From: Octopus sinensis
Lineage: Eukaryota
DNA length: 64,000 nucleotides
Assembly: GCF_006345805.1 (NCBI RefSeq)
Contig: NC_043000.1
Location: forward strand, 64,976,001-65,040,000
Reading direction: 5' to 3'
This document shows, one piece after another, positions 15,406-54,771 of this stretch. A program made the position numbers and the translations under genes. Positions within the stretch are counted from its first letter, which is position 1; each line of letters begins with the position of its first letter. Under the pieces are notes generated by a model that saw only the letters and a program-made list of their open reading frames with translations, did not search any database and was not told the DNA's origin.

Positions 15406-15508
15406 ATGAAACTGCTGTGGATTATTACATGTGTTCTGTCTGTCTCTTTTGGAGTGACAGATGTAGCTAAAGCCCAACAAGCAGACAAACCAGCAGCTGC
15501 ATTAAAAA
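15406..15508 (+). CDS. Coding exon 1: signal peptide ([23 protein letters not shown]...)
   Basis: Acceptor tttcag ends at 15401, ATG at 15406, basic-then-hydrophobic N-terminus, donor A|gtaagc at 15509. Phase 1 matches the next exon. The acceptor implies an upstream non-coding exon. Confidence 0.8.
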
Positions 15509-18500
15509 GTAAGCAGATTATCATGAAAATATTCTACAAAATATATTTTGATTAATCATGTTATATATTGAAACATTTGTGAATTGCTGTTGCATATAAT
15601 TTTCGTGTTTTCTTATTTATTTATTTATTTTTGCTTTTTAATGTTTCAAACTTGATCTAACTAAGCTTGATATTTTGAAATTTATAAAAAAGATATTCTA
15701 AGAATGTTAATCATTCAACTTAGGTTAATGGCTTAAAGCCTATTGTACTAGTTAAGTTGATTTGGAGTTCTTTGCTTGGAGCTTATTCAGCTTGTCATGT
15801 ATGTTAGTTATGAAAAATATATTTAAAATTTGTTCTACATGTCATGATTACTTAGAATTATTTAGAAATTATTTAGTTAGTCAAGTCTTCTGTTTCAAAA
15901 GAGTAATTTTAGCTTATGGGTATAGAATTTTAGGTTGTCTCAATGTCTGTAATTGGTATTCAAGTTTGTGAATGTGTGTGTGTGCATGTGGGTGTGTGTT
16001 GTGAATGTAGTGTGTTTGTGGTGATGCGTGGCTTTGTGGTTAGGGTGTTGGACTCATGATCATAAGATTGTGGTTTCGATTCCTGGACCAGGTAACATAT
16101 GTTCTAGAGCAAAACACTTCATTTCACATTGTTCGAGTTCACTCAGCTGGCAAAAATGAGTAATCCTGCAACAGAGCAGCATCCCATCCAGGTAGGGAAT
16201 ATATACGCCATGAAACCAGAAAACCAGCCCTTATGAGTCAGTATGACTTCAGAAGGTAACTTACTTTACCTTTATGTAGTGTGTTTATGCATGTGTGGCA
16301 CCTTGGGCAAGTGACTTTTACTATAATTACAGGTCAACAGTAGACTTACGAGTAGATTTGACTGATGGAAACTGAAAGAAGGCTGTTTTGTATGTACACG
16401 TGTGTGTGTAAAATACACATCTATGTGTGTTGGAGTGTGGGTGTATGGACGTTTGTTTCTCTCTGTTTTGGTATCGCTTTAAATGATTGTCACTGTCATA
16501 GAAGCAATATCATTGACTTTCACTATTCTGTGAGATCATGTCTGGCCTTAAAGAAAAAATTACCTTCTTTGGAAATAAGTGAGGTTTGGCAACAAGAAAG
16601 GCACCTGGCCATAGAAAATCTGCAACAATAAATTTTATCCAACTAATGCAAACATGGAAAAGTGGACATCAATATGATGATGATGATTTTCATGTTGGAA
16701 GTTGAATCTGTTGTCAGCTAATCACAATAAAGTATTGTATGATTTCAGTTGAGGACAACAGTTTCTTTTCAGAATATAAAGAATTCTGTTAAACCTTGTA
16801 TATGCTATTTCAATACTTTTACGCGATCAAAGATAGTGAGCTGGCAGAATTGTTAGCTCAGCAGCATTTTCTCTATCTTCACATTCTGAGTTGAAATTCC
16901 ACCTAGGTTGACTTCACCTTTTATCCTTTTGGGGCCCAGTTGAGTATTGGGCTAGTGCAATCAACTCCCCCGAAATTATTGGGCTTTTGTCAAAATTTGA
17001 AATAATATTTTTATGTGATCAGGCATTTTAGAACCTCTATTATCTGTTAGCTAGTTCCATTCAGTATTTTTTTTTTGTTAAAAGTGTGATTTTAATATAA
17101 ATGTTTCTAGTTAGTTTATATTGAACTTGGAAATTTTGATACGTATAATCTGTTGGAACAAAATTTCAAGTGAATAATTTTTTATTTGCATTTGATGTTA
17201 TCGGGTACTCTCACATGTTTAGCTGTGAAATGAAGTGGAGATAGACTAAAGGTAAATAGTTAAGCACCCTTGGTATTCCCAACCCAGCAGTCATTCTTTT
17301 AAATTATTACACTGCTCAGTGCTCATTCTCTAAAATTCTACATTCATCTCTAGTCATCTAAGATCTGGCAATAGCAGTTAGACTGTGTTTTGCTAATGAG
17401 GTCTAACAAGACCAAAGCATACCCTCAGTTTGCACTGTACTGACTATACTCTAACTCACTTCCTAGTGATCCTGTTTTTAATTAATTTTAATTATCTAAA
17501 ATTTCTTGCTCCACTACATTAAATATCTCCAGTCTTCACTTTACTGAAGGAAAATGGTTTAGTTGTTGCTAACATACAAATAAGATTCTTCACCAAGAGA
17601 AATAAGCAACTCATGTTCCTATTTTTCCACTTCAGATATGCATTGTCTCCATTTCACTGCATAGAAATATGTTTCAACTTTACATTACTTTTGGAGGTTA
17701 TATTATATTTTAGTGTATGGGTAGTTAGCCTTGTGTATTTTCTTCAACTAAAATTATTTTTTCATATCTGAAACATAATGGCCAGTTATAGAAAAAAAAT
17801 TAACTTAAAATGCATACTTTCTTTTATTTTGTAGGAAAAAGTTGTTCCAAATGGGTTTTTGATGAATGCAAAGTAAATGGGGGTGTCTGTGGATCTGGTA
17901 AAAAAATTGGCCGGAGAACAGGAAGTAATTGTGGTAAAAAAGAGAAAACATTCTCTTGCACAATACCTTGTGAAAGCAATGATATGGTGAATAATAAAAT
18001 GAACAAAGACAAGAAAAAACGAGCTGGAGGCAAAGGTAAGCTGATTCATACGTGTCTTTCTTTCTTTACAAGATTGTCATTCAATTCGTTTTCATCAGGA
18101 ATGACAAATGAGGTAGATCATTTTTTTACATTTTTTTCTTGCACTCAGTTACATGTGCATTTTCATATATGCTTTCTTTATATTTGCAAATAGCTATTAT
18201 GTCAGTCTTTCTGTAGTTTATAGTAGAATTAAATATGAAACTACAAATGTTATTTTTACATTTGATAATATTTGTCATAGCAGAAATTTCATAAACAGGT
18301 GCTACTTTCGCATGTTGTCTAACAAAGTAGCTGTATTCAACGCTGTAAAGTGACCTTTCATGTTATGAATTTATTACCTGTGCTTACCTTTTTTAACCCT
18401 CTAAGTGTCAGTAGTGAGCTTTTCTAGTCACACATTGATCACAGTTGCTAGAAAGTACTGAGAAAAGATGCAGTAGATTTGTTTGTAGCATTCCAAAATG

Positions 18501-18828
18501 ATATACGAAGCATGTCTCATTAAAGGATTCAAATTTTGATTTAGATTTTTATGATCAACTGTATGTCCTCAATAATAAATCATTATTTAATAATATTCAA
18601 CTTGTTATATCATCATGCAGTATAAAATTCTTGTAGTAGAGGTAGACTACATGCTAAAATGTATATGGCGAGTAGGCCATACACTAAGGTGACACGCATA
18701 AATGTTCTTATCAATAAATTCCTTATCATACATTGGTATGTATGTATGCATGCATGTATGTATGTATGTATGTATGTATGTATGTATGTATGTATGTATG
18801 TATGTATGTATGTATGTATGTATGTATG

Positions 18829-18875
<47 letters not shown>

Positions 18876-21800
18876 ATCAAAAGAGTTTGATTCAAATTCG
18901 TTGGTACTCTTGAGTTTCAAGCATGATGCTTGGCATTGCCAAATGTGTCCTTTGTTTTTAAGATTGTAGAGTGTGAATTGAAGAAATTTTTTTACTATTT
19001 CTAGTGGCTTGAGAACTGTATAGAAGGTCCCAGCATGACAAGGTTTCTATTTTATTGAACTTTGGAAACTGGAAAGGGATTTGAACAAAATTCCTATCAT
19101 CCCTTAAGGCAGAAACAAATTCTTTGGTTTAGTAAGATGTTCAATTCTTTCTGCCACTCTGCATTAAATAACAATGAATATCATGTGTTAAAGGATAGCA
19201 CTTGTCAAAAGTTGTTGTTGTTCTTTAGCCCAGCTCATTCCTATCCAACTTGATCTAGGATCACAAACATTCCTCTTGTGATCTTAGATATTCATTGTTG
19301 AATATGTCCTACCTTTTTTAAAGATTGTAGGATGTATTATCTGAAGGAATTTGGCTGTTATTTTGAGCAACCATGTAGAGACTCCTTTTTTGGATTCATT
19401 TCTTAAAAGGGTTTTAGGAAAAAGGCAGTAACAAGGATAATGAGCATATTGTTAGAAAAGTGGACTGTTACAATAGATTGTAATAGATGAGAATAAAAGT
19501 AGAGAGCGTAATGTTTTTAAGGTAATGAGTACCCTGCAGGTGGTATTGCAAATGAGATATATTGCTAGAAGTATATAATTCAAACAAGAAACGAAAAAAA
19601 AAAATGTAATTCAGTTAAATAATTCTAAATAAACTACAAACTAATAACGAATAAGTAAGAAGTAACTTGATAAATGAAATACAAAGACTGGAAAGGTAAG
19701 GAACATCTTATTTATCCAGCATAAAAGTGACCTCTATTGAAAAAGATACTGCCAAGAAGTTAATTGATGTTGAAACTATGCCACCAATATTACCTTGGAG
19801 ATAGTGAGGTTATGGAGGTAAGAAACGAAAGGTATGTAGGATTTTAGAATCCTATGAAAGAGACTCGACATAACATTAACTTAACAAATACTCTAATAAT
19901 TTTGGCATGTTTTATGAGCAGTGTTAAGAAATTTGTGGAGACAATCATTCATTTATACTTATTGAAACTATAACATAGTAAAAACATAGACTTACATTTG
20001 TAATGCACTAATTGATCAGTGCAAGAGATTAAGCTCAACTGGGAAATCAATAAAACTTGCAGTGAATTCATAATTTATTTGCATTAATTAAAGCAATATT
20101 TCATTAATATGTGTTAGGAGTATATTTAAAAAGAATATGTTTTCCAACTATTAGTGATTCATATAATTACATGCTGCATGTAAATGGTGATTTGTTCATT
20201 AGCCTCACTACTATTTTATAGTATTGTGAGAGTATAGCTCCTTGCTTCTCAAAATTGGCAGTATCACACTCTGGGAAGGATGAAAATCTTTATGTGGGTA
20301 CTGGGGACGAAGAAGGGTGGTGATAAATGCATCTGTACAGCTTTTTAGTCTTTGACTATTATTTTAATATTAACTTTAAAACAGTTTTAATTTAATATTA
20401 TGCTGAATTGTTTAGTTAGCCATAATCACAATAACAATGATAATCATCACCATCATCATCATCATCATCATCATTTAGCATCTGTTTATCATGCTAGCAT
20501 GGGTTAGACAGTTTGACTGGAACTAGTAAGCTGGAGAGCTGCACCAAACTCCAGTCTGTTTTGGCTTGGTTTCTACAGCTGGATGCCCTTCCTAACACTA
20601 ACTTCTCCATAGAGTATACATGGGTGCCTCTAATGTGTCACTGGTATGGGTGCCTTTTATGTGTCATCAGCAAGGGTACCTTTCATGTGTCACTGGCACA
20701 AGTGCCTTCTACATTTACTTGCACAGGTGCTTTTTATGAGTCAGTGGCATGAATGTCTTTTATATGCCACTAGCACAGATGCCTTTTGTGTGTCACCAAT
20801 ATTAACAATAACAGACTTTGAAATTTGAATAAATAAATAAATAAAACTGAAGAGCATCCAGTTATAGAAAATCTGCCTCAGTGAATTTCGTTCAACCCAT
20901 GCAATCATGGAAAAGTAGATATTAATACAATGAGAATATATGCTACATATGCTTGTAAATAATAAATGATATACAAAAGTATTGTTTTCGAAACATATTT
21001 TCAATTTTTATTCTTTATGCAAATCCCCTGGCAATATTGGTCTCAAACTTGATCACAAGGCCAGCCATTTCTTTGAAGCCGGTAAGTTGATTAAATTGAC
21101 CTCAGTGTTCAACTGGTACTTATTTTATCAACTCAGAAAGGAACAAAAGCGATGTTGACCCCAGCAGCATTTGAACTCTGACTGTAAAGTTGGAAAAAAT
21201 ACCACTAAGCATTTTCTCTACCAGTTTGCCATCCTAAACCATCTGGTAATATTAATGCTCAAATGATGGCAAGCTGGCAGGATTGTTACCACACTGGACA
21301 AAATGCTTAGTGAAATTATTTCCAACTCTATATTCTGAGTTCAAATGCTGCTGGAGTTGACTACACCTCTCCTCCTTTTGGGCTTGATAACATAAGTATC
21401 AGTTGAGCACTGGAGTCGATGTAATTGGCTTAATCACTTCAATGAAATTGCTATCCTTCTGTTAAAATATGAAACAAATATCTGTACTTGAAATAAGTTG
21501 GGGAACTAGTAGAATTGTTAGCATGCCAGACAAAATGCTTTGCGGCATTTTGTTTGTCTTTACGTTCTGATTTCAAATTTCAATGAGGTTGATTTTGAAT
21601 TTTATCCTTTCATGGTTGATAAAATAAGTTCCATTTGAGCACTGGGGTCAATGTAGCTGGCTCACTCCTTCCCTCAGAATTACTGGCCTGGTGCCAAAAT
21701 TTGAAACCAGTTTTAGTGCTTGGAATGTTTTGACACTCCATTGAAGAACATGTCTTATGTGCAAGTAATTGTTAACAGCAAGTAGTTGTTGGGAGAAATA

Positions 21801-28235: not shown

Positions 28236-28288
<53 letters not shown>

Positions 28289-31200: not shown

Positions 31201-33180
31201 TCATATATATTGATATTGTTACTGACATTTTATAGTGGTAAACTAAGTAGTTACTTAGTTCCAAGTTGGTTTTGATTGAGCAGACAGAACTATAATCAAA
31301 ACTGTTCCAATCTCGACCCTTCCTTAATTTTGTTTGGCCAGGACTAAAATTCTATCTCTCTCATTCCCTCTCACCTTCTCTCTTTCTTTAAGACAACAGC
31401 CTATTATTTGAGGGTGGTTTGGCTGCTATTTGTAACTGATCAAGCAGTTGCATAGATGCTATCTTCTGTAACTACAAAGTAAATAGTCACAAGATGTAAT
31501 CATGTGATATAATTGATTCTAATGACCTCCAGAATTACATAAGAATTTACTCAATTTTCTTTGATTAAGAGCAAACATATTATCATAATCATATGTACCC
31601 CTATGTTGAAGTAAGCTAACCTTATTGTTTTGGTCTGATTTTGTAAGTAGGCTTCCTGTTGTTAAAATCGAGTCAGCCCTAACTGAGCTGTGCTCCTACT
31701 ATGACCATCCTATCATTTTGTATATTTACATTGTCCAATGCATCTTTTCTACTTTTAAGATAATAGGGTATGATTAGAAGCAATGTATCCTTTTCAAATA
31801 GAGTGATGTGTAATTTAAGGAAGATTTGACTACTGCTTTTAGTAGGTCAAGCATCTACATAAAGCATCCCTTAGTGCTTTGTAGTTTTAATGTTACAATA
31901 CAAGGTGGCTCGCTGGCAGAAACGTTAGCATGCCAGGTGAAATGCTTAGCAGTATTTTGTGTCTTTACATTCTGAGTTCAAATTCTGCCGAGGTCGACTT
32001 TGCCTATCATCCTGTTGGGGTTGATAAATTAAGTACCAATTGCATACTGGAGGGGGGGGTCGATCTAATTGACTGCCCCCCCCCCAATATTTCACACCTT
32101 GTGCCTAGAGTAGAAAAGAATGTTACAATGCAAGTGATGTTTTGATGTTTTCAATTAAGATTTTTTCATCTAATTCTGATATCTTGCAATATATAATGTT
32201 GTACAATGTGTAAGAGTTACTTTTCTATTTCTTTTGTTACAGAATGTAAGTATATGAAAGGGACTTGGTCTGCTTGTGATCCCAACACCAGCACCAAAAA
32301 TATGACAATGATGTTGAAGAAAGGCGATCCAAAGAAATGCCCTGAAACTAGAATAAAATCTAAGGGTTGTAAACAAGGAAAGGGTAAGTTTTTAAATTCC
32401 CTGCCTAGTCTGTAAAATCTACAGCAAAAAAATTAATTAAAAAAAAATGTGATAACAGAAAATTCCATAACTGCTGCTGCATGCAATAACTTCACTTTAG
32501 TTGCATACACTTGTTGTATATTGCAACTGTGGTTATATATTGCTTCTTTTTATTATAATTTTGTCTGCATAGATGTATTTGTAATTGTACATTGTAGATG
32601 ATGGCTGTGTACATTTGTTGTACGCTATTATTGTAACTGCAAATGGACTTATATATCTACTAAGACAACAACAGCAGTCATTCTTAAATCCTTTACTCAT
32701 AAAAATTTTGTAACTTTCAATAAACGAACTTTTCTAACATGGGATTAATTGAATTAAACTTAAATATATGAAAGATTACCATCCTCTTCTTTAAATATAG
32801 TGAGAAAAATGGTGACTTAATTACAAAAGTATTTGGTCAGAACCCAAGAAACTTTGCTTTGCATCATCAATAAAGTAGTTTTGCTCTGTTGTATTCCCAC
32901 TGTATAACAGCATTGGCAAATGTTTCTCCATTTGCATCTGTTTTCTCATTTCTTCCTCCTGCATGCATGTGTGTGTGAGTGTGTGTGTGCATGAGTGTGA
33001 TGTGTATGTACAAATATATATGTATATATATATAAATGTGTTGCGTGTGTGTGTATGTATATATGTACGTGTGTATATATATATATTTATGCATAATAAT
33101 AATATTAGGGAGTATAATTCCAAACTTACAGGGAAAAATTCAATTTAGCATTAAATCAAATTTCGCAATATATATATTTA

Positions 33181-33230
<50 letters not shown>

Positions 33231-36200
33231 TATGTCTCTGAGTGTGTGTGTGTGTGTAACATGTGAGTATGTATCACTTATCAACGACAACCACAACCCT
33301 TTCGTTACTATATTTCTGACCAAAATACACCCCTCATGAGTTTCAATTAAATTCTAAAATAATCATGAATCTAGGCTTGTTTCATTAAATAACTGTAACT
33401 TTTTTACTTATCAACATATTAATGTGATATTTGGAACATAATTAAAGAAATGGTTCTTAATCGATTCTATTGCAAAACTTTTGTCTCAAAGTGACTTTAA
33501 TTACAGGTAAATCCAGGTAAATTGAGCAAAAGGTAAAAATATTAAAATTTTGTTTAAACATCACCATAGAAAATGAATCATCAGCTAGTATTCAAATGGG
33601 TATGCAACAAAATTTTGATAAAGAAGAATTGTGCACATCTCTATATCATCAGTTGAATTTAATGCACAACAGGTGTACCATAAAGGTGGAATAAACTGAA
33701 ATATTGGAATCCACCGTAAGTTTGACCGAACTAAAGAAATCGGTCAAAAAATAATATACGGCCCTGGTTATGGTATGGAAGTGATAAGTTCCAGACCACA
33801 TCGTTCCCTAGGCCATGCTGACTAACATTATTTACCCTGTATAAAAACTAAATCCACGCAGTACCCAGTATTTGCTTCACAAATTTTCCGAAATTTGAAC
33901 CCCCATTTTGTGTTTGTTTACGTTCTGCGTAAGTTTGTTTCCGCATTGATCGCTTCAAACAATAACTTCCAGACCACATCATACCCTAAGCCATGCTGAC
34001 TAACATTAGTTTCCATGTATAAAAACTAAATCCGCAACAGTACCCAGTATTTGTTTCACAAATTTTCCAAATTCGGAATCAATGATTGATAACATGAAAC
34101 TCCTATCTATTTTCAAAGTTGAAGAAAAATCGATGCCGAAAAAAATGAGGAAAAAATCTCCCGAAATTCAGGGAATTAAAATTACACGTCGATCTTTGTA
34201 CAAAACTGTAGATGAACTGTTTACGAAGCATAATCACGTGTTTTCACGAATGTACTAAAGAGATTTGCTCTGATATTCTCATTTAAATATGAATAGGTAA
34301 ATTCGGACGGGTTTGGGCGGTTTGGTCACATTAACCAAAGTTTTTTTCGGGCGGCTTTGGGCGGTTTGGTAACGAAAGGGTTAAGCAGGTGATCATTAGA
34401 AAACTAAGAACAAGGGTGACAGAACGCCTATGATATTCAGAAATCTTTCTACCTCACTTCTATCAGCCTCGACACAAATATGTTAGCATTGGTAAATTTT
34501 GAACATCATCTATCAAAATACCCAGCAATTAATTAAAAAGAAGAATTGGTTCTATTTTAAACATTCATATCTACAGTAATTAAGAAATATCATTAATGCT
34601 TGAAGACTCCAGAAACTCAATACTATCATTGTTTAGATGATGTCTCTTAATATGTCCTGTCTTCTATATAGTTGATGACTCAAAGGATTTTTATCTTCTT
34701 CTGTGTGCGTGTTATTTGCATGCTATTTTTGTGTTTTTATTTTGTGGTATGTGGATGGAAGCACTCCGTCGGTTACGACGACGAGGGTTCCGGTTGATCC
34801 GATCAACGGAACAGCCTGCTCATGAAATTAACGTGTAAGTGGCTGAGCACTCCACAGACACGTGTACCCTTAACGTAGTTCTCGGGGATATTCAGCGTGA
34901 CAAGGCCGGCCCTTTTGAAATACAGGTACAACAGAAACAGGAAGTAAGAGTGAGAGAAAGTTGTGGTGAAAGAGTACAGCAGGGATCACCACCATCCCTG
35001 CCGGAGCCTCGTGGAGCTTTTTAGGTGTTTTCGCTCAATAAACACTCACAACGCCCGGTCTGGGAATCGAAACTGCGATCCTACGACTGCGAGTCCGCTG
35101 CCCTAACCACTGGGCCATTGCGCCTCCACTTTGTGGTATGTACATGTGTATATGAATACATAAATGTTAATGATGTTAAGTTATGGAAGCATGCAAGGGC
35201 AGTTGTGGAACAATTGGCCTGTCTTGCAATGTTGATACTTTTTTAAGCCAATGGACAAGTTATCACATATAAATAAGTGTCTCCTAGACTATGTTACACC
35301 AAATATTTCATTCTAAAAATACTTCAGTATTTATCCTAATTAACAAAGATTCAAATCAAGTTTATTTGGTTCAGTCTCTAGTTGTGAGAGTAAATATGAT
35401 TGATCTTGTGATTAGTACAAGTATCAGATTATTATAAGGCAAACTCTTAAGGTGGCACGTTGGCAGAATCATTAGCACGCTGGGGAAAATGCTTAGCAGT
35501 ATTTTGTCTGTTGCTCTGTTCTGAGTTCAAATTCCACTGACATTGACTTTGCCTTTCATCCTTTCAGGGTCAATAAATTAAGTACCAGTTGCATACTGGG
35601 TTCAATCTAATTGACTTGCTCCCTCACCCCAAATTCCAGGCCTTGTGTCTATATTAGAAAGGATTATTAGATTAACTCTTACAAGTATTAGATTCCATCC
35701 CAAAAATTTGTAATTCTCATAGATATTAATACAGAATGTATTGAGTCATATAATAATTGAATTAGGAGTCTCATTTTATAGAAAAAAACCTTATATTATA
35801 AAATGTTAGTATATGCTATCAAATGCTATTGTTAATAAGATTGTCATTTTTTAGACTGTCAACATCATCTGTAAAGATGAAATCTTATTTTACATATTTT
35901 CATCTACACCAGGTTTTAATTGTTTTAATCTCTAATCATCATCAGTGCCTTATTCCTGGATATGTATATTGTATTAATGTACAAACAAACCTTGATTTTT
36001 AAAGCATGGGTAGTAATGGTTTTATCTGCTTGGCCACTGATGCATCTACTCCTGTAGTATGCATATACCCAGGAGTAAGAAACCTGATGACAATCAGAAA
36101 TCAAACTATTTATAAAGTAGCTTAAGATGTAAGTATTAAGAAATGTTTCAGCTCTAAAGATGAGGTCAAGAATCTGAAAAATTATAACTTTACCAAGTGT

Positions 36201-38186
36201 ATGCTATGTTTATAAACTAATGTAGAGGATACCATATCCTGGAGATATATCTGGATGATAAGCAAAACTATTGTAAGGAAGCATATTTTCTAGTGGTTTT
36301 GGAATTCATACAGTCAAAACTAAACTGATATACTGTAATCTTTTTGAATTGATCAAAATGTTTAATGGGTGTAGTTGTGTTGTTAATGTTTATGTGGCTG
36401 AATGTTTGTCAGGAGAAGCTGCTGGCTCATGGCCTTCAAGTTGACTCCTTGCACAAAGGTCACTGAGTGTTGAAGCACATCACGTTTTCTCCCTTTGGAG
36501 ATTGATAGCAAAAAAGGACATTAATGATACTGATATTGATTCAATAAAAGTCTGTGAACAAGTAATTTGTAAAAGAAAAATTGTAATTGTAAACGTTTGA
36601 AGGATTTGAAAAGACAATAAAAATATAAAAAAAAGACAAATCAGTATTACAAAATATATCATTTCATTTAACCTTTATAGAGAACTTATTGTTGCACTAT
36701 CTGATGATGGTTAATGATATATGTTTGAAACTGAATCTTCATCCTCTCATTGGCTACAATTTTAATGTAAAGGGGATGTTGTTTATTTCTGAGAAATCTT
36801 ACCATTCAGTTTGTGGTGAAACACAATTCCAAATGTTTAACCCTTTTGTTACTGTATTTCTGTTGAGATGTTCTGTGTTTCTTTCAATTACTTTAAATAT
36901 AACAAAGAATTTAGTAAAATAACTTAGTTATCATTCAGATTGTGTTAGGAACATAAATTGTGACTAAGGTTTGGTTGAAGATTTTTAATTCCAAACTTAT
37001 GAAAACAAAACATTTGTACTCAGAGCCAGAGCTGGTTTCAGCCGGGTTGGTAACGAAAGGGTTAAGTGAATGTTGTAAATAACTTTGTTCTATATGATGT
37101 CTGAGTGTGGCAAAGGGAATTATAATTTTACTGAGTGTATGCTATGTTTAGATAAAAGGAATAAATAAGATATAAGAAATCTGTACAGTACTAAGAGCTG
37201 GTGATGTCTATTTGGAAGATAATATAAACATAGAGTATTGATTTATTTCATACATTTCTAGATTAACAGTGAAATTTTAATCTGTTTAGGTTTTTACCCA
37301 CCACAATTACTCCTTTCTTGGTTTAGTATAATTGTTCTTTTTTTTTTTGGTTTGGTTTCTTTTCCCTTTCTCACAAATTTAGAGTTTATTCTTTTTTTCA
37401 AATCTTTGTTTAGCTTTTACTGTTAGTTTGTATGTAATGAAGTCAGAATATACATGAACTTTATTTTGGAGCTGTATTTATAATATATTATACTTTATAA
37501 TATGTCAAGTACCTCTTTTGAAAAGATGTAAAATAAAAAACAAACAAAACCCCTAAATGTGGATCATTTATTATAAAAATTTGTTAATAAGAAAATATAA
37601 TTACGTGTATGACAAAGAAGGTTTGTGTTTTAAAACTGACAAGATATTGACTTTATCTATTGAATATCCAACACCAATAGGGTTTTCTATACATTTCACA
37701 TGTGTATGTGTGTTTGTGGCGACTCATATTATATTCGGTTATACAGAATCGCTTGTATAATTTACAGCTTTTAAGCTTGAGGAGTTCTAAATGAATGCTT
37801 TATATTTTATTTATATGGCCATAATGTTTAGAATTTGTTTGTAGCATGTAAATATACCCGAGGCCCTTGGTCCCAATGTGATGCCCAGACAAATGAAAAA
37901 ACAAGGGTGTTAAAACTAAGGCGTGGAGACCCAAACAGATGTCAAAAGGAGAAGACATTAACAAAAACATGCAAATTAAGTAAGTTAGCAACATTTCAAA
38001 CCTTTGTTTTACAGAGTCAGTTTGTAGAGAGATGAACAGATTAACAGATTAAATCAAAATTAACCCACTGAATATGTTTAAATCATTTGTTTAATTGCTT
38101 GTCAACTGAATAAACTTATCTATATTTTATAAATGAATTATCTGCCAGAATTTTTCAGCATTAAGAGCTGGAATGTCTAAGGACCT

Positions 38187-38237
<51 letters not shown>

Positions 38238-38618: not shown

Positions 38619-38660
<42 letters not shown>

Positions 38661-41600
38661 CATCCGAATCATGTACATGTTTGAGCATATACATACATAT
38701 ATGCCACATGCATGCATGGATATATATATATACACATATATATGTGTGTGTATATGTGCATGTATGTATATGTATGTATATGCATATATATACACTGATA
38801 TAATATGAAAGCAGTCAAATTTTCTACAAGTGTAATTTACATTACTATTCTTAATTTATATGATATTAGTTATTATTAATTTATTTCTGTTATACTTACT
38901 AAAAGTGTCCAACTTTGTAACTGAATATTAGCAACCGCTCCCTCCAACCATGATAGTTTTATACATTAATATAATAATAATGCCAAAAAAATTGTTCATA
39001 TTTAATAAAATAGAGAATATGACCATGCAAAACATAAACTTTTAAACATTTTACAAAACTAATTCATTCCAACTTACCCCTTTTTGCCTTACCTTCTCCA
39101 GTTACTTTTTATCAGTTATGTCAGATATATGTTGGCAGTTTCTGAAAATGAGGGTTACACATCATCATCATCATCATCATTATTGTCGTCATTGTCATCA
39201 TCATCATCACCATCTTTATCTTCCTGCATCTCATCCTCCTCCTATTCATCATATAAGGGATAGTATTCTATATAAATTTTTTGGATAATCATCAGTAGAT
39301 GTTCCTTCTAACTAAACATGTGTACAATATATTACATGATATTTACCCAGTTCCAACATACAAAATAGGCAACATTAATACATTATACACTAAAAAAAAA
39401 CTATCCTTATTTCTATTTTCATGAGGATGTAAAGGAGAATATTTGGAGCAAGAGTTTAGTAGTTAAAGAATAGCTCTATAAATGCTTTATAGTATTTCCT
39501 TTGGTTCTCTGTTCTAGATTGTTCTGTGTTCAGTCTAAGGTAATGAATAAATAAATAAATAAATAAATAAATAAAATAAAATAAAATAAAGCCCTAGTAA
39601 GTATAGTTAAAAGAAATTATCATTTCAGTGATGGAATAATGATAAGGAGATGTGTTATTTGTGTTTCTGCTAAGTCATACAATTTGTACATACCAAATTA
39701 TTATTCATCAAGTAAAAAAATTGTTTTATTCATTAGCTTAAAGTTTACTCTAAAAATATAAGCAATTTGTTTTCTGACAGCTTTATAATGAATCTTGACT
39801 TCACAGCTAGTGGGGGGAAAAAAAATTACTAAAAATTTTTTTGTCAGTTATAATAGAAATTAATCTATGAATCGAGCTTGCTGCTGATATTTTTACAAAT
39901 AAATCATTTTGATGAAGTAATCTGTAAAAACTAAAACTTGAAATAAAAATCTCTATATTTATATTTTTTAGAAGCGATATAAACAATATACAGCATACTA
40001 TAAAAGTATTATTACCTTCAATATACTATAAAAGTATTATTTCCTTAAATATTTCTCTGATATTGTGTTGAAACAAAAGCAGATATAATCTTAGAATTTC
40101 TCAGATCACTGACTATAATTAGCCAATGCATATAACTAAAAAGTGATATTGTGCATTGTTATACGAGGTGTTCCATTATATATTTTTTTTCTAATCTAAC
40201 TTGTATGCATTTGAAAACTTATAGCAGAACATTAAATTTCTGTAATATTCCTATTCCAGTTGAAATTAATTATCCTTACTGATTTTAGAGTGTAAATATG
40301 AGAAGGGTGAGTGGTCTGCCTGTGACCCTGTCACTAATAAAAAGGTCCGTGTTCTAACTTTACGTCGAGGGGATCCAAATAGCTGTGAAAAGGAAAAGAC
40401 AATAAGCAAGTCCTGTCGCCGAAGTGAGTTAATATGATTTAACTTTTTTTAAAAAATTTTTTTCTTGAATTTATCAGCACTTGTTATTGTTGATGCCTGA
40501 GTTTCCTTGCATTGCTATAGTTTTTGTAAATTACTAAACCCTACACCTGTTTCTATTAGGTGGTTGACTGGCAGAGTTATTAGAGGGTTGGATGGAATGT
40601 ATTGTGATAATTGTTCTAACTCGCTGCACTCCTGAGTTCAAATCCTGCCAAGGTACTCTTGTCTTTCATCTTTACAAGGATTAATTGAAAAGAAGTACCA
40701 GCACAATGCTGGTGTAGCCTCCTCTCTCTCTGTCTTTCTCTCCAGCTATCAAACACTGGATGTTCTACTGGGTCCAGGGCAGGAGGGCTCAGAGAGTGAC
40801 CCTGTCTGCATGCAGCTATATGAACACGTAAACATTTTGCAAAAGCATGGCATTTGTTACTCAGTCTTTCTTGCTTGTGAGTGTGTTAGCTATAGCTTTT
40901 TTTTAAGCTTTTACACCTGTTTTATCATAGTTCAAATTAAGTTATTTGATCAAACTGAAATTTCTTTTATCTGTTTCCTTTTGTCAGTGGTTTTAAAGGA
41001 ATAAATCAAGATATTTCTTGGATTTATTGATAATAGTTGTTTTTATTAATAGATTAATCTTTCAGTGAAGATAACTTTTTTCATTCAATGTCATTTGAAA
41101 TAGTCCATTACTCATCTCAGCTAACAATGTAATATTTTGTCTTCATCAATAATATTTTCCTAACAATTCAGATTCTTAGTTGTAGTCATTGTCATGATTA
41201 TTATCATGATCATCATCACCATCCTCATCATCATCACCATCTTCATCATTGTTTTTATCATCGTGCATTTGATTTTCTTTGCTAGCATGCTGTTGTTGTG
41301 GTTGTTTAATCCCAGGTCAGCCTTGACAAAGTAGGCCTATGATCAAAGGCATTCTTTGCAAGACCATCTAGATTTAGCTGCTAGAAGTGGCAGCTAAATC
41401 ACATAGAGTTTCTTTTATTGGCTTGATGCTGGCATGGGCATTACATGTACACAATTCTAATACGTGATCTGATTATGTTTAACTCCACTTCAATACTATA
41501 TTTTTCATGAAATATACTGCCTTTCTTTCGATTAATTTTGAAAATAAAGAAGAATTTTGTCAGATAACTTTGTTGTTATTAAGCTGGTGTTTGGAGCATA

Positions 41601-47600: not shown

Positions 47601-50600
47601 TTATTGATATTACTACACAAATGCTTTCTTTGTGTCTTATATCTGTTGCTACTGGTGTTACAACCTGAACAGTTTCATATGTGAATGTATGTGTTCATTT
47701 ACTGTTACTGTTCTTGATTCTGGGCTGTCCCCTTCCGAGGCTTGACGGTTTTGAATTGTTATCCTTGTTTCTGTAGCTTTACTTTTTCCTAGGTAGGAGT
47801 CTTGGACCTAGACAAACCCATTTTTGTCTCTGAGAAGAGGTGGTCCTTATTAGTCTGGCCTCTGTTTTTTGACCTGTTCAGCGAGAGAGGTTCTACGGGG
47901 TCTTGTACTCAGTTGAAAGAAACTTTGGGGTCATTGAGGCACAGAAGCCAGCATAATACAATGAGGAATGGATATTGTAATGCATATTACTTCTTTACCA
48001 ATGTTAAATCTTCTGTTGGTTCTTTAACTTCTTGGTGGAATCCACTACCAGCATTACATGCATTTCTAATTTCATATTGATATGATTGCTGCATATCACT
48101 GATTGAGTTACTAATTCTTATAATTGACTCTTACATAAATAGTCAGTATTCTGACATAGTTGGGAGAGATGTTATTATTATAACTAATTTGTTTGGGTGT
48201 AGAGCCAGGACCTTATAACAGCATTTTCTTTATAAGAGTTCAATCCAAAATGGATATAAAATGATGCTGATGATAAAGTTGATGTAAGTTGCATTGTAAA
48301 GGGTGGTAAGCCAGCAGAATTTCTAGTATACTGGGAACAATGCTTAGCAGTATTTCATCCCTCTGTATGTTCTTTGTTCAAATTTCACTGAGGTTGACTT
48401 TGCCTTTGATTCTTTTAGTTTTATTAAAATAAGTACCAATTGAACATTGGGACTGATGTAATTGACTTACCCACTCCCACAAACTTGCTGGTCTTGTCCC
48501 AAATTTTGAAATCAGTTTTACTCTAGAAAATGAGATACTTTTGTAAAGAATTCAACATGTAGGAAATTACTGAAGTTTTAAGAGTTCATGAAGTTCATTC
48601 AACATTTCATATTTAAATTACATCAATTACTGCTTCAGTGCAGTAACTGATATCCAGCCAGTGAACTGGGAGAATCATGAGAGTATTAGACAAAATGCTT
48701 CTAGCAATTTGAGTTCCAAAGCTACTAAGATTAACTTTACCTTCTTTCATCCTTCCAAGTTAAATACTTTAACCCTTTTGTTACCAACCCGGCCAAAACC
48801 GGCTCTGGCTCTGTAGTACGAATGTCTTGTTTTCATAAGTTTTTCATTAAAATATACCACCAAACCTTAGTTGCAATTTATGTTCCTAACACTAGCTTAA
48901 TGATAATTAAATTATTTTACTAAATTCTTTGTTATATTTAAAATAATTGAAAGAAACACAGAGCATCTCAAAATAAATACAGTAACGAAAGGGTTAAATA
49001 CCAGGCTAGTGCAGTTAGCTAGCAGAACTGTTAGCTCCTTGAACATGATGACTCCTTATGGCATTTATTCTAGCTCTTAACATTCTGAGTTCTAATGCTG
49101 CTGCGACCTACCTGGAAGGTGGACCTAATTCATCACCTGGGTTAACACTACTGCTTGCTACTTTGGGTGTCTTTCACTGCATTCATATTTTTGCAAGCAT
49201 TCAGGTCAGGCCTCTATTTTGAGGATGTCTTCATCCCTCACAACAGTTTTGAAAAATGTGATGAGTACCGCCCACCCTCATCACTGAACATAATTATCAT
49301 CAGCATAATGTCCACTTTTTCGTGCTTTTATGGATTGAACAGAGTTTATTGGGGCAAATTTTCTATGGCTTGATGTCCTTCCTATTGTCAACCTTCACCT
49401 GTTTCCAAGTGAGGTAATATTTTCCCATGGCCAGACATATTCTTACAGAATATTAGAAATGAATAACACTGTTTGTAAGACAGTGACACCCTTTAATGAC
49501 TAGCACATAATGTGAAGACAAAGAGACACATATATCTACCAGTTCCAAACAAGGTTTTGGTCAACCTGGGATTATTGCAGAAGACACTTGCTCAAGGTGC
49601 TATGCTGTAGTACTGAACGTGGCACCATGTGGTTGAGAAGCAAACTTCTTAACTACACAGCCATATCATTCAGGTGAGAAACAAGCAAGAATAAACCAAA
49701 AAGAAAAGAAAAGAAAAGAAAAGAGAAACATTAAAAACAGCAAAGTACAAAGTCATGGTATTTAATCCTCTGGATAAAAGGAAATAAGGATAAGTCACAG
49801 ACTTCAGACAATGATCCTTTGTTAAGACAAGAGAGGAAAAACTTTGAAGAAAAAAATGTTGATTCATGTAACATGTTGTTACATTTTTGAATCAACAGCA
49901 AATTTTTTTTCCTTCCTTATTTTTTTCTATCTTTTCTTTTTTGATGAAGGATCACTGTCTGAAATATTGCCTTATCTTGTTTTCTATTCATCCACAACAA
50001 TAAATATATTGGCTCTTGTTTATTAAAAAAAAAAGAAGTTTTTCCTTGTTCTTCAATTAAATATTAATTACTAAAATATATATAGCAATATTTCATAAAT
50101 GTGAGAATGTTTAACTCATGGAAGGTCCTTCCTAGTTTCATTATTGTTGTATTCATAGCATTAATTGTCCCAGTTTTAGGAGCAGTAAACTAAACATTCT
50201 CTGGTTTATCTATTTTACTTCTAGTGAGTAAAACTTCTATTATTAATTTATTTTCCTCTTGTTTGTAGATTGTAAATATAACAAAGGAGCATGGTCAAAA
50301 TGTGACCCAACTACAAAAACTAAAAGCCGAACACTAACTTTGAAGGCTCTGAGTGACAGCTCGTGTCCAGCCAGCAAGCCACAGACTAAGGACTGCAAGG
50401 GTAATGTGAATAACAAAGGTATGTTTTATCTCTGTTCACTTTTACAAGCATTGAGTGACATAAAGGTTTTCTTGTCTACTTTTATATCTCACTTTGAACT
50501 TTTTAATGAATTACATACGCCACCTCATTTTAGTTGACACAAAATTGTATTTCTAATATTTTAATAGGCTCAGGTTTGGCTATATGGCAAGAAGCTTGCT

Positions 50601-50764: not shown

Positions 50765-50799
<35 letters not shown>

Positions 50800-51345
50800 C
50801 AATAATAATAGTGATTGTTTCTTATTAGGAACAAAATGGTTAATAGGACTGCTACAGAAGTGCACAAGTAAATGAGACGAGTATAACAAACTTTGGTTGT
50901 AGAACAAACAACAAATTTAAGGTCATCCACCTAACATATCACTGGATGTGATATGTTAGGTGGATGACCTTAAATTTGTTGTTTGTTCTACAACCAAAGT
51001 CTGTTATACATACATACATATATATATATATATCTATACAATATGTTACATTACTCGGTAGTCAAGATAAAACTCTGAGTTTCAGATGCCGAAGTGGAAA
51101 TCCACAACACCATCTCTTCGGTTATCTGGCTATTTGAAAACGTTATGAAAAAATACGGTATTTTTTCATAACGTTTTCAAATAGCCAGATAACCGAAGAG
51201 ATGGTGTTGTGGATTTCCACTTCGGCATCTGAAACTCAGAGTTTTATCTTGACTACCGAGTAATGTAACATATTGTATAGATAAATTTCCTCTATTTACA
51301 TAATATTGAGGTCTCTTTCTTTCTTTTGTTATCTTACCGTTTTAT

Positions 51346-51381
<36 letters not shown>

Positions 51382-51388
51382 GTATGTA

Positions 51389-51427
<39 letters not shown>

Positions 51428-52326
51428 ATGTCTGTGTCTGTGTTTGTCTTCTACCGCTGCTTGACAACTGGTGTTGGTTTGTTTACATCCGGATAACTTA
51501 TCAGTTTGATGAAAAGAGACCAAAAGAATAAGTAACAAAATACAAGTACTGGTATCAATTCATTAGACTAAAAGTTCTTCAAGATGGTACCCCAGCATGG
51601 CTGCAGTCTAATGACTGAAACATAAAAGATACAAGATCCATTAAGTCTGTGGCAATAATTTATAATATGCTAAATCATTATTATATTGTATAAAAAAACT
51701 TACTGGAAATACTTATAATATGCATAGAGCATAGAAAACGGAAAAAGAAAATGAAAATCTATCTTTCAAATATTCCTTCTTTGCAATTCAGAAGGTTAAA
51801 TTTTATTACATTTTAACATTTTTAGTACATAATATTATGGGTAGATTCATTTTTGATGCCAGTCCCATTCTTGTAGACTGAATGTTTTTTGCCTCTGGCT
51901 GGAGATGGAAATTGAGTTGTGTTCTAAACTGAAACACATGGATTTGTTATTATGATACTTGCCTTATACCCTAAGGAGTTTTTCATCTTTCGTTTATATG
52001 CTAGTCTGATTTGATGTGCCAAAAGTTGATGATCTGAAGGGAACTAGTGTTTCTAGTGCCAATTGGCCATAACTATGTAAATAGAAATAACTCTGCTAAA
52101 GTGATGTAACAGTGATGAGTAATTTCTTTTTTTTATTTTGATTTTTCACTGAAATTCTAGGTTGCAAATATTCATATGGGGACTGGAGTGCTTGTAATAC
52201 AACAAGCAACATTCGTACCAAGACTATGACACTAGATAGTGGAGATCGTTCAATGTGTGAAGCAACTAAAACAGTGACAAAGTCTTGCAACAAGAAAGGC
52301 GGAAAAGGTAAGTAGTAGTAGTAGTA

Positions 52327-52372
<46 letters not shown>

Positions 52373-54771
52373 GGTGGTGATAGTTTATTCTTTTTCACTT
52401 ATTTTATTTGAAATATTTTCTCAGTCATGACTGATTGAGTGACACATGGCTGAAATGATCAGGAGCTGATCTTTTGTCACAGAAGTTATGAGTGAAACCA
52501 TTGTATCCAGTATTGAATTGGTTTGTTGCATTGAAAACAGGTCCTATTTTCATTTTGCAGTGATTAGCATTATGTGGAGTACCTTGGTATGCATGTTTCC
52601 TCTAATTTAGTGATGTGTGAATATTCTGAATGAATGATTTACCTTGAAAGCTGCTGTATGCAGCTGTATATAATAAATACTCTATATTCTGTTGCTCTTC
52701 CAATATAAACATTGGCACTCCGTCGGTTACAATGAGGATTCCAGTTGATCTGATCAATAGAACAGCCTGCTCATAAAATTAATGTACATATGGTTGAGCA
52801 CTCCACTGACACGTGTACCCTTAGTGTAGCTGTGAGGGAGATTCAGTGTGTCACAGAGTGTGACAAGGCTGGCCCTTTCAAATACAGGTGCTATTCATTT
52901 TTGCCAGCTGAGTGGACTGAAAAATCATGAAATAAAGTGTCTTACTCATGGATACAACACGTCACTGGGAATTGAACTCATGACCTTACAATTGTGAGCC
53001 AAATACCCTAACTATTAAACCACATGCATTCACAACGTAAACATTATTACCTGTATTTATTACCTTCAGTATATCTACGACTACAGTGTCCAATGTATCT
53101 TTCCCTTATTTAAGATGGTGAAGGTTTGATTGGAGGAGAATTTGGTCACTACTTCTGACAGATTGAGTAACTGTATAGAGGTTCCCACCTTCACTTGGAA
53201 AAGAAGAACAAGACTTGTAAATCTGCTATGCTTTCCTTTAGGTTGAAAGGTCATGTTAGCTAAGGATTAGCTAAAAGTGTGTTGAATGACTATGTTGAAG
53301 GCAACTTAATAATCTCATCTAAAAAGAAAGGATTGTTTATAAGAAAGAAATCAAAAATATATTTCTAGGCTTGAGAGGCACTGATGTCATTATGTTGTGC
53401 ATATATTAATAATTTGTGAAGGCTTAGTGATTAGGATATTTGGCTCACGATTGTAAGGTCATGAGTTCAATTCCTGGCAACACCTTGTGTCCTTGAGCAA
53501 GACACATTATTTCATGTTACTCCAGTTCACTCAGCTGGCAAAAATGAGTAGCACCTGTATTTCAAAGGGCCATCATTGTCACACTCTGTGTTATGCTGAA
53601 TCTCCCTGAGAACTACATTAAAGATACATGTGTCTGTGGAGTGCTTGGCCACATGCATGTTAATTTCACAAGCAGGCTGTTCTGCTCAGATCAACTGGAA
53701 CCCATATTGTCATTACCGACAGAGTGCCATATCAACAATTTACTTAAAAATTTAGCAATAGGAATAGTTACATAGAAGATAAGTGGACTGGAGTAACATG
53801 AAATAAAGTGTCTTGCTCAAGGACACAATATGTTGCTAGGAACTGAACACATGACCTTACAATCATGAGCCAAATACCCTAACCACTAAGCTATGCACCT
53901 TCACAAATTGTTGATACAAGCACAACATAAGGTTATTTCATATTGTATGTTATAATAATTGCAGGATAGATATTTTATTCTTTGAGCATTTTTAATGTAT
54001 GAAATGTATTTATGATTATGTTGAGATATTCTGTTACAGTGAACAGTTTAGAAAGCATGTAATCAAGTGTGTGAGGAAAGAATTTAGGGAAATGTTTTTT
54101 AGCTGCTTTTGAAAGGTAGTTTGAGAAGCAAAATTATTTAATAGTAGACTCAAATAGCATTATAGCCATAGTAAGTATGAAATGTTGACAAATCATTCAA
54201 CTGCATTCATTATTATAACAGTTTATTATTTTTTTATGTGATTATACCTATTATTAACATTTTCAGAATGGGATGGGAAACTCCTTGCTTTAGGCCAAAT
54301 TCCACTCGCATTTAATTTTGAAACCATTTACTCAAGAAGTCTCTAAAACTGTCATGAAAAAAAAAAAAAAAAAGAGAGAAGACTGAAAAAACTCCTGTTT
54401 AAGTATTATAAGCAAAACAGTTCATATAATTGCAAACACACTATTTTTCTCAGTTCAGTTATGTTAGCAATTCACCTCTTGCACTACAAAAGTTTCTCAT
54501 TCCTTAGATTGCAGTCTTCCAAAGACCTTGTTTAACATGGTATGATCTTATCTATAAAATAGTTCTTGTGAATAAAGAATTTTTGCACATAAAAATGAGT
54601 TTTTAATTAAACATTAATATTGTATGGATTTTGTATTTTTCAGAACGTTGCTTCTTTGGCGCATGGGGAGAATTTGGTCCATGCAGAAATGGAGTGAAAA
54701 TTAAGAAAAGAGTTGTGCAGTATGGTGACTCAGAATGTATGAAACGTGCTGTGAAGACATTAAGTTGTTAA
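15406..54771 (+). CDS. PTN/MDK-like: Spliced pleiotrophin/midkine (miple)-family gene, 8 coding exons, 1140 nt CDS, 379 aa: signal peptide + PTN/MK N-domain + 5 PTN/MK C-domains + terminal variant domain
   Basis: join(15406-15508,17835-18035,32243-32383,37845-37979,40289-40423,50269-50418,52161-52307,54644-54771) = 103+201+141+135+135+150+147+128 nt. All junctions are GT-AG, phase 1, and open through to TAA. Protein: [379 protein letters not shown]. Cys/Trp spacing matches the PTN/MK domains. Confidence 0.9.
17835..18035 (+). CDS. Coding exon 2: PTN/MK N-terminal domain (6 Cys) plus basic linker
   Basis: ttttgtag|...G|gtaagc. C-x2-W-x4-C-x6-CGxG-x5-RTG-x2-C-x4-KT-x2-C-x-IPC follows the vertebrate PTN/MDK N-domain pattern. 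Confidence 0.9.
20470..20945. mobile_element. SINE-like repeat with internal ~29-bp subrepeats and (CAT)n tail (RTE-tail type)
   Basis: ggatgcccttcctaac motif; about 6 copies of gtgccttttatgtgtcac..gca at 20620-20800; related pieces at 16580-16690 and 49290-49440. Confidence 0.5.
24530..25080 (+). mobile_element. Possible decayed restriction-like-endonuclease domain of a CRE/NeSL-type non-LTR retrotransposon
   Basis: [19 protein letters not shown]...VWG resembles the GxxxxxEPxxLxxxDGKRPDG..PW motif; many stops. Confidence 0.4.
27139..27969. mobile_element. Foldback/MITE-like element with ~165-bp diverged terminal inverted repeats
   Basis: About 27139-27306 is the reverse complement of about 27812-27969. 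Shared blocks include aattattgctattc..tacttgtatccagtttt, ttggttagt, ttgattgcta and atggtcaataatttctca..tga.caatattgaccaaaata. Confidence 0.75.
29985..30366 (-). mobile_element. Full-length tRNA-derived SINE (family with ...atgactgaaacaagtaaaag tail)
   Basis: Minus-strand A-box tggctgtgtgg and B-box gagttcagaccc. The same family occurs at 1-245 (3' half), 16290-16450, 49530-49660 and 50570-51635. Confidence 0.8.
31905..32120 (+). mobile_element. tRNA-derived SINE (ctggcagaa..gttagca..ctgagttcaaatt family), representative copy
   Basis: Approximate + copies at 16840, 21270, 21500, 35455, 40560, 42465 and 48300; approximate - copies at 4880, 14020, 21050, 21930 and 57750. Confidence 0.8.
32243..32383 (+). 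CDS. Coding exon 3: PTN/MK C-domain repeat 1 (KGD)
   Basis: gttacag|...G|gtaagt, 141 nt; CKY-x3-W-x2-CD...LKKGDP..C...C. Confidence 0.92.
33297..34380. mobile_element. 1084-bp non-autonomous piggyBac-type element with an internal ~110-bp direct repeat
   Basis: TIR CCCTTTCGTTAC...GTAACGAAAGGG; TTAA on the right, ACAA on the left; internal repeats at about 33786-33890 and 33963-34070. Confidence 0.8.
34760..35130 (-). mobile_element. tRNA-derived SINE (ggcactccgtcggttacgac family), representative copy
   Basis: Minus-strand head tggcccagtggttagggcag...gtttcgattccc. Related copies at 12236-12540 (-), 16015-16200 (+), 52715-53033 (-), 53415-53730 (+) and 53770-53900 (-). Confidence 0.8.
36841..37061 (+). 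mobile_element. 221-bp piggyBac-type MITE, copy A
   Basis: TTAA|CCCTTTTGTTAC ... GTAACGAAAGGG|TTAA. Confidence 0.88.
37845..37979 (+). CDS. Coding exon 4: PTN/MK C-domain repeat 2 (RGD)
   Basis: tttgtag|...A|gtaagt, 135 nt; [12 protein letters not shown]...LRRGDPNRC...C. Confidence 0.92.
40289..40423 (+). CDS. Coding exon 5: PTN/MK C-domain repeat 3 (RGD); not in the supplied ORF track
   Basis: attttag|...A|gtgagt, 135 nt; [12 protein letters not shown]...LRRGDPNSC...C. Confidence 0.92.
43137..43520 (+). mobile_element. Possible Helentron-associated (HINE/DINE-1-like) non-autonomous element
   Basis: caaatttgagcgcaatcggatg followed by (GACA)n and tttatataatagata is the layout typical of DINE-1-like elements; assignment by resemblance only. 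Confidence 0.4.
44080..44600. repeat. Degenerate low-complexity satellite (tgttac/ttacat-rich)
   Basis: Recurrent ttacagctt, tacatgt and tgttact; produces spurious Y/C/L-rich ORFs. Confidence 0.8.
44887..45103 (+). mobile_element. Mariner-derived MITE
   Basis: TA|TGAAGGGATGCTGAAAAGTTCCTGG ... CCAGGAATCTCTCAACATCCCCT imperfect TIRs. Internal [18 protein letters not shown] matches the mariner C-terminus KLxxRWxKCVxxxGxYVE. Confidence 0.75.
46214..46707. mobile_element. hAT-type MITE
   Basis: Termini TAGAGGTCGCCAAA / TTTGGCGACCCTTG; 8-bp TSD not convincingly preserved. Confidence 0.55.
46930..47720. repeat. Degenerate tgttacatctgtt satellite with higher-order periodicity
   Basis: An actggtgttac...tgaa...tgtttc block recurs at about 46997, 47284 and 47650. 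Confidence 0.75.
48773..48993 (-). mobile_element. 221-bp piggyBac-type MITE, copy B (inverted relative to A)
   Basis: TTAA|CCCTTTTGTTAC ... GTAACGAAAGGG|TTAA. Its reverse complement aligns end-to-end with 36841-37061. A degraded relative ends at about 41704. Confidence 0.88.
50269..50418 (+). CDS. Coding exon 6: PTN/MK C-domain repeat 4 (two possible in-frame donors)
   Basis: tttgtag| acceptor; donors G|gtaatg at 50401 and G|gtatgt at 50419; [12 protein letters not shown]...C...C. Confidence 0.9.
50881..51009. repeat. Inverted repeat: 62-bp arms, 5-nt loop, 1 mismatch
   Basis: 50881-50942 versus 50948-51009, loop tggat. Confidence 0.97.
51031..51283. repeat. Perfect 253-bp palindrome (126-bp arms, 1-nt centre at 51157)
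   Basis: Arms compared base by base with no mismatch found. Confidence 0.97.
52161..52307 (+). CDS. Coding exon 7: PTN/MK C-domain repeat 5
   Basis: attctag|...G|gtaagt, 147 nt; [12 protein letters not shown]...C...C. The ORF track shows only an antisense ORF here. Confidence 0.9.
54644..54771 (+). CDS. Coding exon 8: terminal divergent 4-Cys PTN/TSR-like domain and stop
   Basis: tttttcag| acceptor; [45 protein letters not shown], in frame with phase 1. Confidence 0.85.

Follow-up and report, generated by a model that had tools for sequence, protein, structure and literature searches.

A pleiotrophin/midkine-family gene of Octopus sinensis with one domain per exon, skippable C-domains and a thrombospondin-repeat-like terminal domain

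We analysed a stretch of 64,000 nucleotides from Octopus sinensis (RefSeq assembly GCF_006345805.1, contig NC_043000.1, positions 64,976,001 to 65,040,000 of the forward strand; this whole stretch is referred to as the window, and all positions are given in its coordinates), which carries a gene of the pleiotrophin/midkine (PTN/MK) family. A six-frame motif scan returned five peptides of the form C..Y..G.W..C on the plus strand (at 32245, 37847, 40291, 50271 and 52163), and the DNA next to these, to the ATG at 15406 and to the open reading frames at 17.8 kb and 54.6 kb has canonical AG/GT boundaries throughout. Eight plus-strand exons spanning 15406-54771 were rebuilt from the raw DNA and give a coding sequence (CDS) of 1140 nt for a protein of 379 aa, composed of a putative signal peptide, an N-domain, five C-domains (C1 to C5) and a terminal domain (T):

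15406..15508, plus strand: exon 1, start codon and putative signal peptide (23 residues, then QQ), ending in a phase-1 GT donor
17835..18035, plus strand: exon 2, six-Cys PTN_MK_N domain and a Lys-rich hinge that is disordered in the AlphaFold2 (AF2) model
32243..32383, plus strand: exon 3, C-domain 1 (PTN_MK_C, 4 Cys), present in all isoforms seen
37845..37979, plus strand: exon 4, C-domain 2, a cassette left out of RefSeq X2 and X4
40289..40423, plus strand: exon 5, C-domain 3, a cassette left out of RefSeq X3 and X4
50269..50418, plus strand: exon 6, C-domain 4
52161..52307, plus strand: exon 7, C-domain 5, the least basic C-domain, left out of O. vulgaris CAI9721582.1
54644..54771, plus strand: exon 8, terminal 4-Cys domain T, resembling a thrombospondin type-1 repeat (TSR), with the stop codon at 54769-54771

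All seven introns have GT-AG boundaries and are in phase 1, their lengths being, in order, 2.3, 14.2, 5.5, 2.3, 9.8, 1.7 and 2.3 kb; the second agrees with the exons 14 kb apart that a first-pass annotation of this DNA had noticed. Each of the six internal exons has a length divisible by 3, is symmetric in phase (1-1) and encodes one Cys-knotted domain, so that any of them can drop out with the reading frame intact. A tblastn search of the window with each domain (E ≤ 10) found no further C-type exons or pseudo-exons beyond the five. The 379-aa product contains 31 Cys, 30 of them after the signal peptide, in the layout N(6)-C(4)x5-T(4). This is the very basic protein, with the same Cys layout, that the first-pass annotation had read from the open reading frames (ORFs). 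The mature protein has an isoelectric point (pI) of 9.8 (86 K+R versus 32 D+E), and all seven small disulfide domains, which are separated by short, basic linkers, carry a net charge of +5 to +12.

As judged from the sequence, the locus is the O. sinensis gene LOC115210287, an "uncharacterized protein" in RefSeq, or an allele with an identical CDS. RefSeq isoforms run up to X4, and the three compared here, X2, X3 and X4, correspond exactly to the translated exons of the window without C2, without C3 and without C2 and C3, respectively; the split-codon residue at each new junction was correctly predicted by phase-1 joining. The 379-aa product is presumably isoform X1. For O. bimaculoides (LOC106868732), isoform X2 is annotated without C2 and X3 without C3. 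One O. vulgaris model (CAI9721580.1, 402 aa) includes every one of the eight exons, shows a single mismatch and has a 23-aa N-terminal extension, and in another (CAI9721582.1) C5 is skipped. The annotated isoforms have 3, 4 or 5 C-domains, and each junction of the eight-exon model is found in at least one of them, which bears out the earlier proposal that the exons are joined in one gene. The accompanying expectation that such a gene would be easy to under-annotate did not hold, given the RefSeq isoforms up to X4 and the full eight-exon model in O. vulgaris. In a cephalopod-like relative with 53% identity, assemblies of three independent sequencing runs contain an uninterrupted N-C4-T CDS on contigs of ~1.2 kb, and another sequencing run gave N-C2-T. 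This is transcript-level evidence for the joint splicing and the alternative use of such exons.

The introns of the octopus gene are long (up to 14.2 kb) and repeat-rich, and a collection of 15 billion proteins held no match to the exact 379-aa product. Both observations would fit exons that belong to separate genes, or some of which are decayed pseudo-exons, with the 379-aa protein an artefact of joined ORF fragments. Against this stand splice sites that are all canonical and in a single phase, and the lack of any frame break. The unity of the gene is decided by the RefSeq isoforms, which are exact subsets of the exons, together with the O. vulgaris model that unites all eight, and we therefore regard the artefact as extremely improbable.

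Residues 1-23 look secretory by inspection, with an A-K-A site behind a hydrophobic core, and in the AF2 model residues 4-25 are helical. An AG acceptor lies at 15400-15401, 4 nt ahead of the start codon, implying a further 5' exon, and a split Asn codon in the O. vulgaris model (P0019) is consistent with this acceptor. The 23-aa extension of the O. vulgaris model was searched for in the window and not found there; it either lies further upstream or is an annotation artefact. Since it would bury the signal peptide if translated, an exon of the 5' untranslated region with a chance upstream ATG is the more likely explanation.

The Pfam model PTN_MK_C (PF01091) matches five stretches of the protein (179.7 bits versus a cutoff of 25.3, E=1.2e-53), well beyond chance. 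PTN_MK_N (PF05196) reaches 22.3 bits versus a cutoff of 20.4 when the exon-2 peptide is scanned alone, a small margin, and is unlisted in the full-length scan. The N-domain aligns to that of human PTN (8voh_B) with E=1e-6 and all six Cys in register, and residues 26-148, which comprise N, hinge and C1, align contiguously to residues 3-111 of human pleiotrophin (2n6f, E=1.3e-10). The structure modelled with AF2 was that of isoform P0001 (N-C1-C2-C3-C4-T). Most of its 10-residue blocks have a per-residue confidence (pLDDT) of ~80-93, the predicted TM-score (pTM) is 0.26 and the hinge between N and C1 is disordered, which indicates a flexible string of beads whose interdomain packing is not fixed. 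A Foldseek search of the PDB with this model returned pleiotrophin (2n6f) and the zebrafish midkines (2luu/2lut) on top with probability 1.00, followed by the TSR arrays of properdin.

The protein combines a C-type domain above the gathering threshold, an N-type domain of the six-Cys pattern C..W....C......CG.G and the solved MK/PTN fold, and the first-pass assignment to a single PTN/MK-family gene is confirmed by these Pfam, alignment and fold matches. The strict vertebrate plan of one N-domain, one C-domain and a Lys-rich tail is not what we find, and the octopus protein is a member of the family but not a strict MDK or PTN orthologue. With vertebrate pleiotrophin (PTN/HB-GAM) and midkine (MDK; PDB 2n6f, 2lut, 2luu) it shares the six-Cys N-domain, the flexible basic hinge and, as far as its putative signal peptide goes, the secretory N-terminus, along with the fold of four-Cys C-domains with the CKY..W..C pattern. 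It differs in having five C-domains in tandem instead of one, in varying their number through exon skipping and in ending with an extra TSR-like domain where the vertebrate proteins have a Lys-rich unstructured tail. When the C-domains are aligned with human PTN and zebrafish Mdka, C2 and C3 prove to have the full set of basic positions (the K-x-R strand, the KR pair and the K that precedes the last Cys). The R is absent from C1, one member of the pair from C4 and both members from C5.

The last exon encodes domain T, whose consensus across phyla, ERCFFGPWGEF..C.NGV..K.R.V..GG.EC.RRAVKTKPC, has seven invariant positions (C3, W8, C14, R23, G28, C32 and C42). In the AF2 prediction T is small, with three strands and a short helix (pLDDT 94), and Foldseek places the TSRs of C8/C9, semaphorin-5A (probability 0.95, TMq 0.67) and Unc5D on top, with weak E-values, as expected for only 42 residues. 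Among PDB sequences the T profile finds the F-spondin TSRs best (E=0.04-0.16). When T domains of octopus and its relatives were scanned singly (n=12), 10 of the 12 matched TSP1_spondin (best E=2.1e-6), nine TSP_1 and four PTN_MK_C; the Priapulus T scored 22.3 bits against a TSP1_spondin cutoff of 41, below gathering, and the octopus T gave no Pfam match at E ≤ 1. Compared with thrombospondin type-1 repeats (TSP_1, TSP1_spondin; F-spondin 1vex/1szl, semaphorin-5A 8ckk), T has the same W..(F/W)..C start, basic R/K strand and three-strand layered fold, but four Cys instead of six and no CSVTCG-type loop. It thus falls outside the canonical TSRs, which score above the gathering threshold and have six Cys and this loop. 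An hhalign comparison of the T and C alignments gave a probability of 91.5% (E=8.5e-7). The possibility that T is simply a sixth C-domain was rejected: the two are related, but more T relatives score to TSR models than to PTN_MK_C.

T is best described as a four-Cys, TSR-like relative of the C-domain that forms a conserved C-terminal cap, and the "variant terminal domain" of the first reading was a fair description of it. It is probably derived from a TSR and would work like one, without being a canonical member. This agrees with the established view that PTN/MK domains are homologues of TSRs (Kilpelainen et al., 2000, as cited in PMC3267162). Searched against 1.84 billion representatives, the T profile matched 361 proteins; among the best 150 of these, about two dozen are short proteins (~150-580 aa) that end in T, and the profile also matches large multi-TSR proteins. 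Five of the proteins retrieved (P0034, P0036, P0037, P0040 and P0018), which come from public assemblies, carry tandem four-Cys TSR-like repeats (CVVSEWSxWSxCxDGxQTRTRTV..GG..CP.L.E...C) which the T profile matches with E ~1e-20, and P0018 is marked with both TSP1_spondin and PTN_MK_C. Such proteins hint at a possible continuum from TSRs to PTN/MK C-type domains outside the animals sampled.

The affinities of T bring up a different reading of the whole protein, as a matrix-resident structural or adhesive protein of TSR type, comparable to F-spondin or the arrays of properdin, which would organise the extracellular matrix rather than signal through receptors. It could draw on the matches of T to TSP1_spondin and TSP_1 in relatives and to F-spondin TSRs in the PDB, on the reach of the T profile into large multi-TSR proteins and on the AF2 bead string, with its low pTM and no fixed interdomain packing. 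Yet the N-domain and the five central domains are specifically of PTN/MK type and not canonical six-Cys TSRs, and the encoded protein is small (~40 kDa) and contains no other matrix modules. We consider a primarily structural role unlikely, and a PTN/MK-type secreted factor the better description.

The distribution of this architecture was scored with hidden Markov models built here for N, C and T on all retrieved proteins and cross-checked by Pfam counts. The forms found were as follows:

Lingula anatina (LOC106165955), brachiopod: N-C4-T
Priapulus caudatus (LOC106820788), priapulid: N-C4-T
Saccoglossus kowalevskii ('Pleiotrophin-like 150'), hemichordate: N-C3-T
Glandiceps talaboti, hemichordate: N2-C3-T
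Asterias rubens (LOC117305338), sea star: N-C3-T
Amphiura filiformis, brittle star: N3-C3-T
Gigantopelta aegis, gastropod: C10-T
Potamilus streckersoni, bivalve: C9-T
Mya arenaria, bivalve: C7-T
Haliotis rubra, gastropod: C6-T
Solemya velum, bivalve: C5-T

Domain order and the conserved terminal domain are alike in these proteins and in the octopus, and copy number is the sole difference, with zero to three N-domains and two to ten C-domains in the other invertebrate proteins. Several of the orthologues bear isoform labels (X1, X2 or X4), namely those of Lingula, Haliotis, Mya, Glandiceps, Amphiura and Saccoglossus, which indicates that several isoforms are annotated in these phyla too. Two C-only proteins, P0015 and P0017, which are insect-like as judged from sequence alone, have neither N-domain nor T.

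These forms bear directly on the idea that the octopus gene is a lineage-specific innovation which fused the vertebrate N-C plan with the C-C plan of flies and amplified the C-domain, as the first-pass annotation had it. Among the N-containing forms seen, the octopus protein does have the most C-domains (five versus two to four elsewhere), and the 67% identity between C2 and C3 suggests a fairly recent exon duplication. But Lingula, Priapulus, Saccoglossus, Glandiceps, Asterias and Amphiura all have N-(C)n-T proteins, the cephalopod-like transcript P0005 already has counterparts of C1 to C4, and up to 10 C-domains are found in Gigantopelta and 9 in Potamilus. The special combination of two plans is thereby largely refuted, and we regard an octopus-only origin as very unlikely. 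The claimed novelty was to lapse if most lophotrochozoan orthologues had this architecture; they do, with (C)5-10-T in Haliotis, Gigantopelta, Mya, Solemya and Potamilus, and the plan extends further, to Ecdysozoa and Ambulacraria. Nor is the N-domain "vertebrate-type", as it had been called: its occurrence in N-(C)n-T proteins of Lingula, Priapulus, hemichordates and echinoderms makes it bilaterian. A counterpart of C5 is absent in the cephalopod-like relative, and the octopus-specific part may amount to at most one extra C-domain.

Since the plan is common to molluscs, brachiopods, priapulids, hemichordates and echinoderms, that is, across Lophotrochozoa, Ecdysozoa and Ambulacraria, N-(C)n-T with its T cap is probably ancestral for bilaterians. 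Given such an ancestor, vertebrate PTN/MK (N-C and a basic tail) would be a reduced form, and the C-only proteins P0015 and P0017 hint at a possible second reduction. A bolder proposal, which we make tentatively and rate at slightly below an even chance, is that the ancestral bilaterian PTN/MK protein was a modular N-(C)n-T array with a four-Cys TSR-like cap at its end, not described until now, which bridges canonical TSRs and PTN/MK C-domains, that vertebrates kept N-C and insects the C-repeats, and that skipping of one-domain exons serves as a valency switch in cephalopods and probably in other phyla with several isoforms.

Taken together, we consider it likely that the locus is a single secreted, strongly cationic PTN/MK gene with one domain per exon and the bilaterian N-(C)n-T plan, whose product would bind glycosaminoglycans (GAGs) multivalently with a valency tuned by splicing. 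The protein would be a chain of small, flexibly linked beta-sheet domains, and the basic face of each would bind heparan or chondroitin sulfate in the manner of PTN/MK C-domains. Arranged in tandem, such domains would provide high-avidity, multivalent binding and could link GAG chains or draw proteoglycan receptors into clusters. The valency would be tuned by alternative splicing of C2, C3 and C5, with avidity and bridging expected to scale with the number of C-domains. Multivalent GAG binding and the cross-linking of proteoglycan receptors, as suggested in the first-pass annotation, are plausible and would fit the basic residues that are kept.

Several points weigh against this reading. C5 is missing two of the basic positions of PTN and C1 one. 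The K-x-R, KR and K-x-C positions are reported as heparin contacts in nuclear magnetic resonance work on MK/PTN. The five-C form in O. sinensis is based on the splice model presented here, the O. vulgaris annotation and the implied X1, and the exact product is the one that found no match in the protein collection. A search of the literature found no reports on expression, binding or receptors for the octopus gene or any lophotrochozoan orthologue. To our knowledge, Drosophila Miple1 and Miple2 are the only characterised invertebrate relatives. Like the octopus protein, which is predicted to be secreted, they are invertebrate members of the PTN/MK family with repeated PTN/MK motifs. The octopus protein has a clear N-domain and a T cap, which the insect-like C-only proteins P0015 and P0017 lack. 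Both Miples are secreted and bind heparin (PMC4224452; heparin binding also PMC3267162). They do not activate Alk, and miple mutants are viable with a shorter lifespan (PMC4224452), so that a growth-factor role is not assured.

The main role might instead lie in host defence, with the protein acting as a polycationic antimicrobial or opsonin-like factor and not as a growth or neurite factor. The high pI and the net positive charge of all domains would suit such a role, as would the nearest folds outside PTN/MK, which are arrays of TSRs, for example those of properdin and of C8/C9. MDK, PTN and Drosophila Miple2 are bactericidal in vitro (Svensson et al., 2010, as cited in PMC4224452, ref. 78). 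On the other hand, many basic proteins act against microbes in vitro, and defence is compatible with GAG binding, so that both roles can coexist. Host defence as the main role appears improbable to us, and a GAG-binding factor with splice-tuned valency remains the preferred interpretation.

The surroundings of the gene are AT-rich (~33% GC in the window), rich in microsatellites and devoid of long ORFs, a composition typical of genomic DNA from animals. Microsatellites are dense, for example (GTAT)34 at 18736-18871 and runs of TA, CA, GA and CAT, and they are the source of most of the longer spurious ORFs. The window contains a dispersed repeat of ~150 bp four times, within introns as well as upstream of the gene (12248-12396, ~34780-34927, 52715-52850 and, on the minus strand, 53589-53727). 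The copies are 80-83% identical, resemble a short interspersed element and contain recurring short ORFs of the 'HSTDTCT...KAGPF' type. Downstream of the gene, a GC-rich (51%), strongly C-skewed block at 58300-59900 (plus strand) contains a 436-aa ORF (58464-59774) with a reverse transcriptase-like 'RYIDD' motif, followed by an ORF with a 'FVEHLRDIR' motif. A second fragment of this block (81-93% identical) lies upstream of the gene at 13625-13940. Pfam gave no matches for the large ORFs of the block or for intronic ORFs. The block probably represents a decayed retroelement with no relation to the gene; by its motifs it might be Penelope-like. Rfam and tRNA scans of the window returned nothing, and inspection of ORFs of at least 70 aa, a weak test for a spliced genome, showed no other protein-coding gene in the flanks.

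The gene is real. Within a known family, it is an ordinary representative of an invertebrate branch that is still uncharacterised. Part of this is already known: gene models are public with PTN_MK_C marked, and UniProt labels relatives as pleiotrophin-like or PTN/MK C-terminal domain-containing. Literature searches on the locus, on PTN_MK_C/PF01091 and on mollusc or octopus midkine or pleiotrophin found no papers that deal with the locus or with multi-C PTN/MK proteins of molluscs. Little here will be very surprising to a specialist. What remains of interest is the conserved T cap, for which Pfam offers no model of its own and which might be set up as a separate family, the vertebrate and fly forms as possible reductions, and a valency that would be set by splicing. 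An "uncharacterized" octopus locus gains a name as a PTN/MK-family factor, and a testable idea follows, namely that avidity for proteoglycans should depend on whether an isoform has 3, 4 or 5 heparin-binding modules. For the family as a whole, the picture centred on vertebrates and flies is corrected, in that the textbook two-domain PTN/MK protein looks reduced from a longer modular protein that most invertebrate phyla keep.

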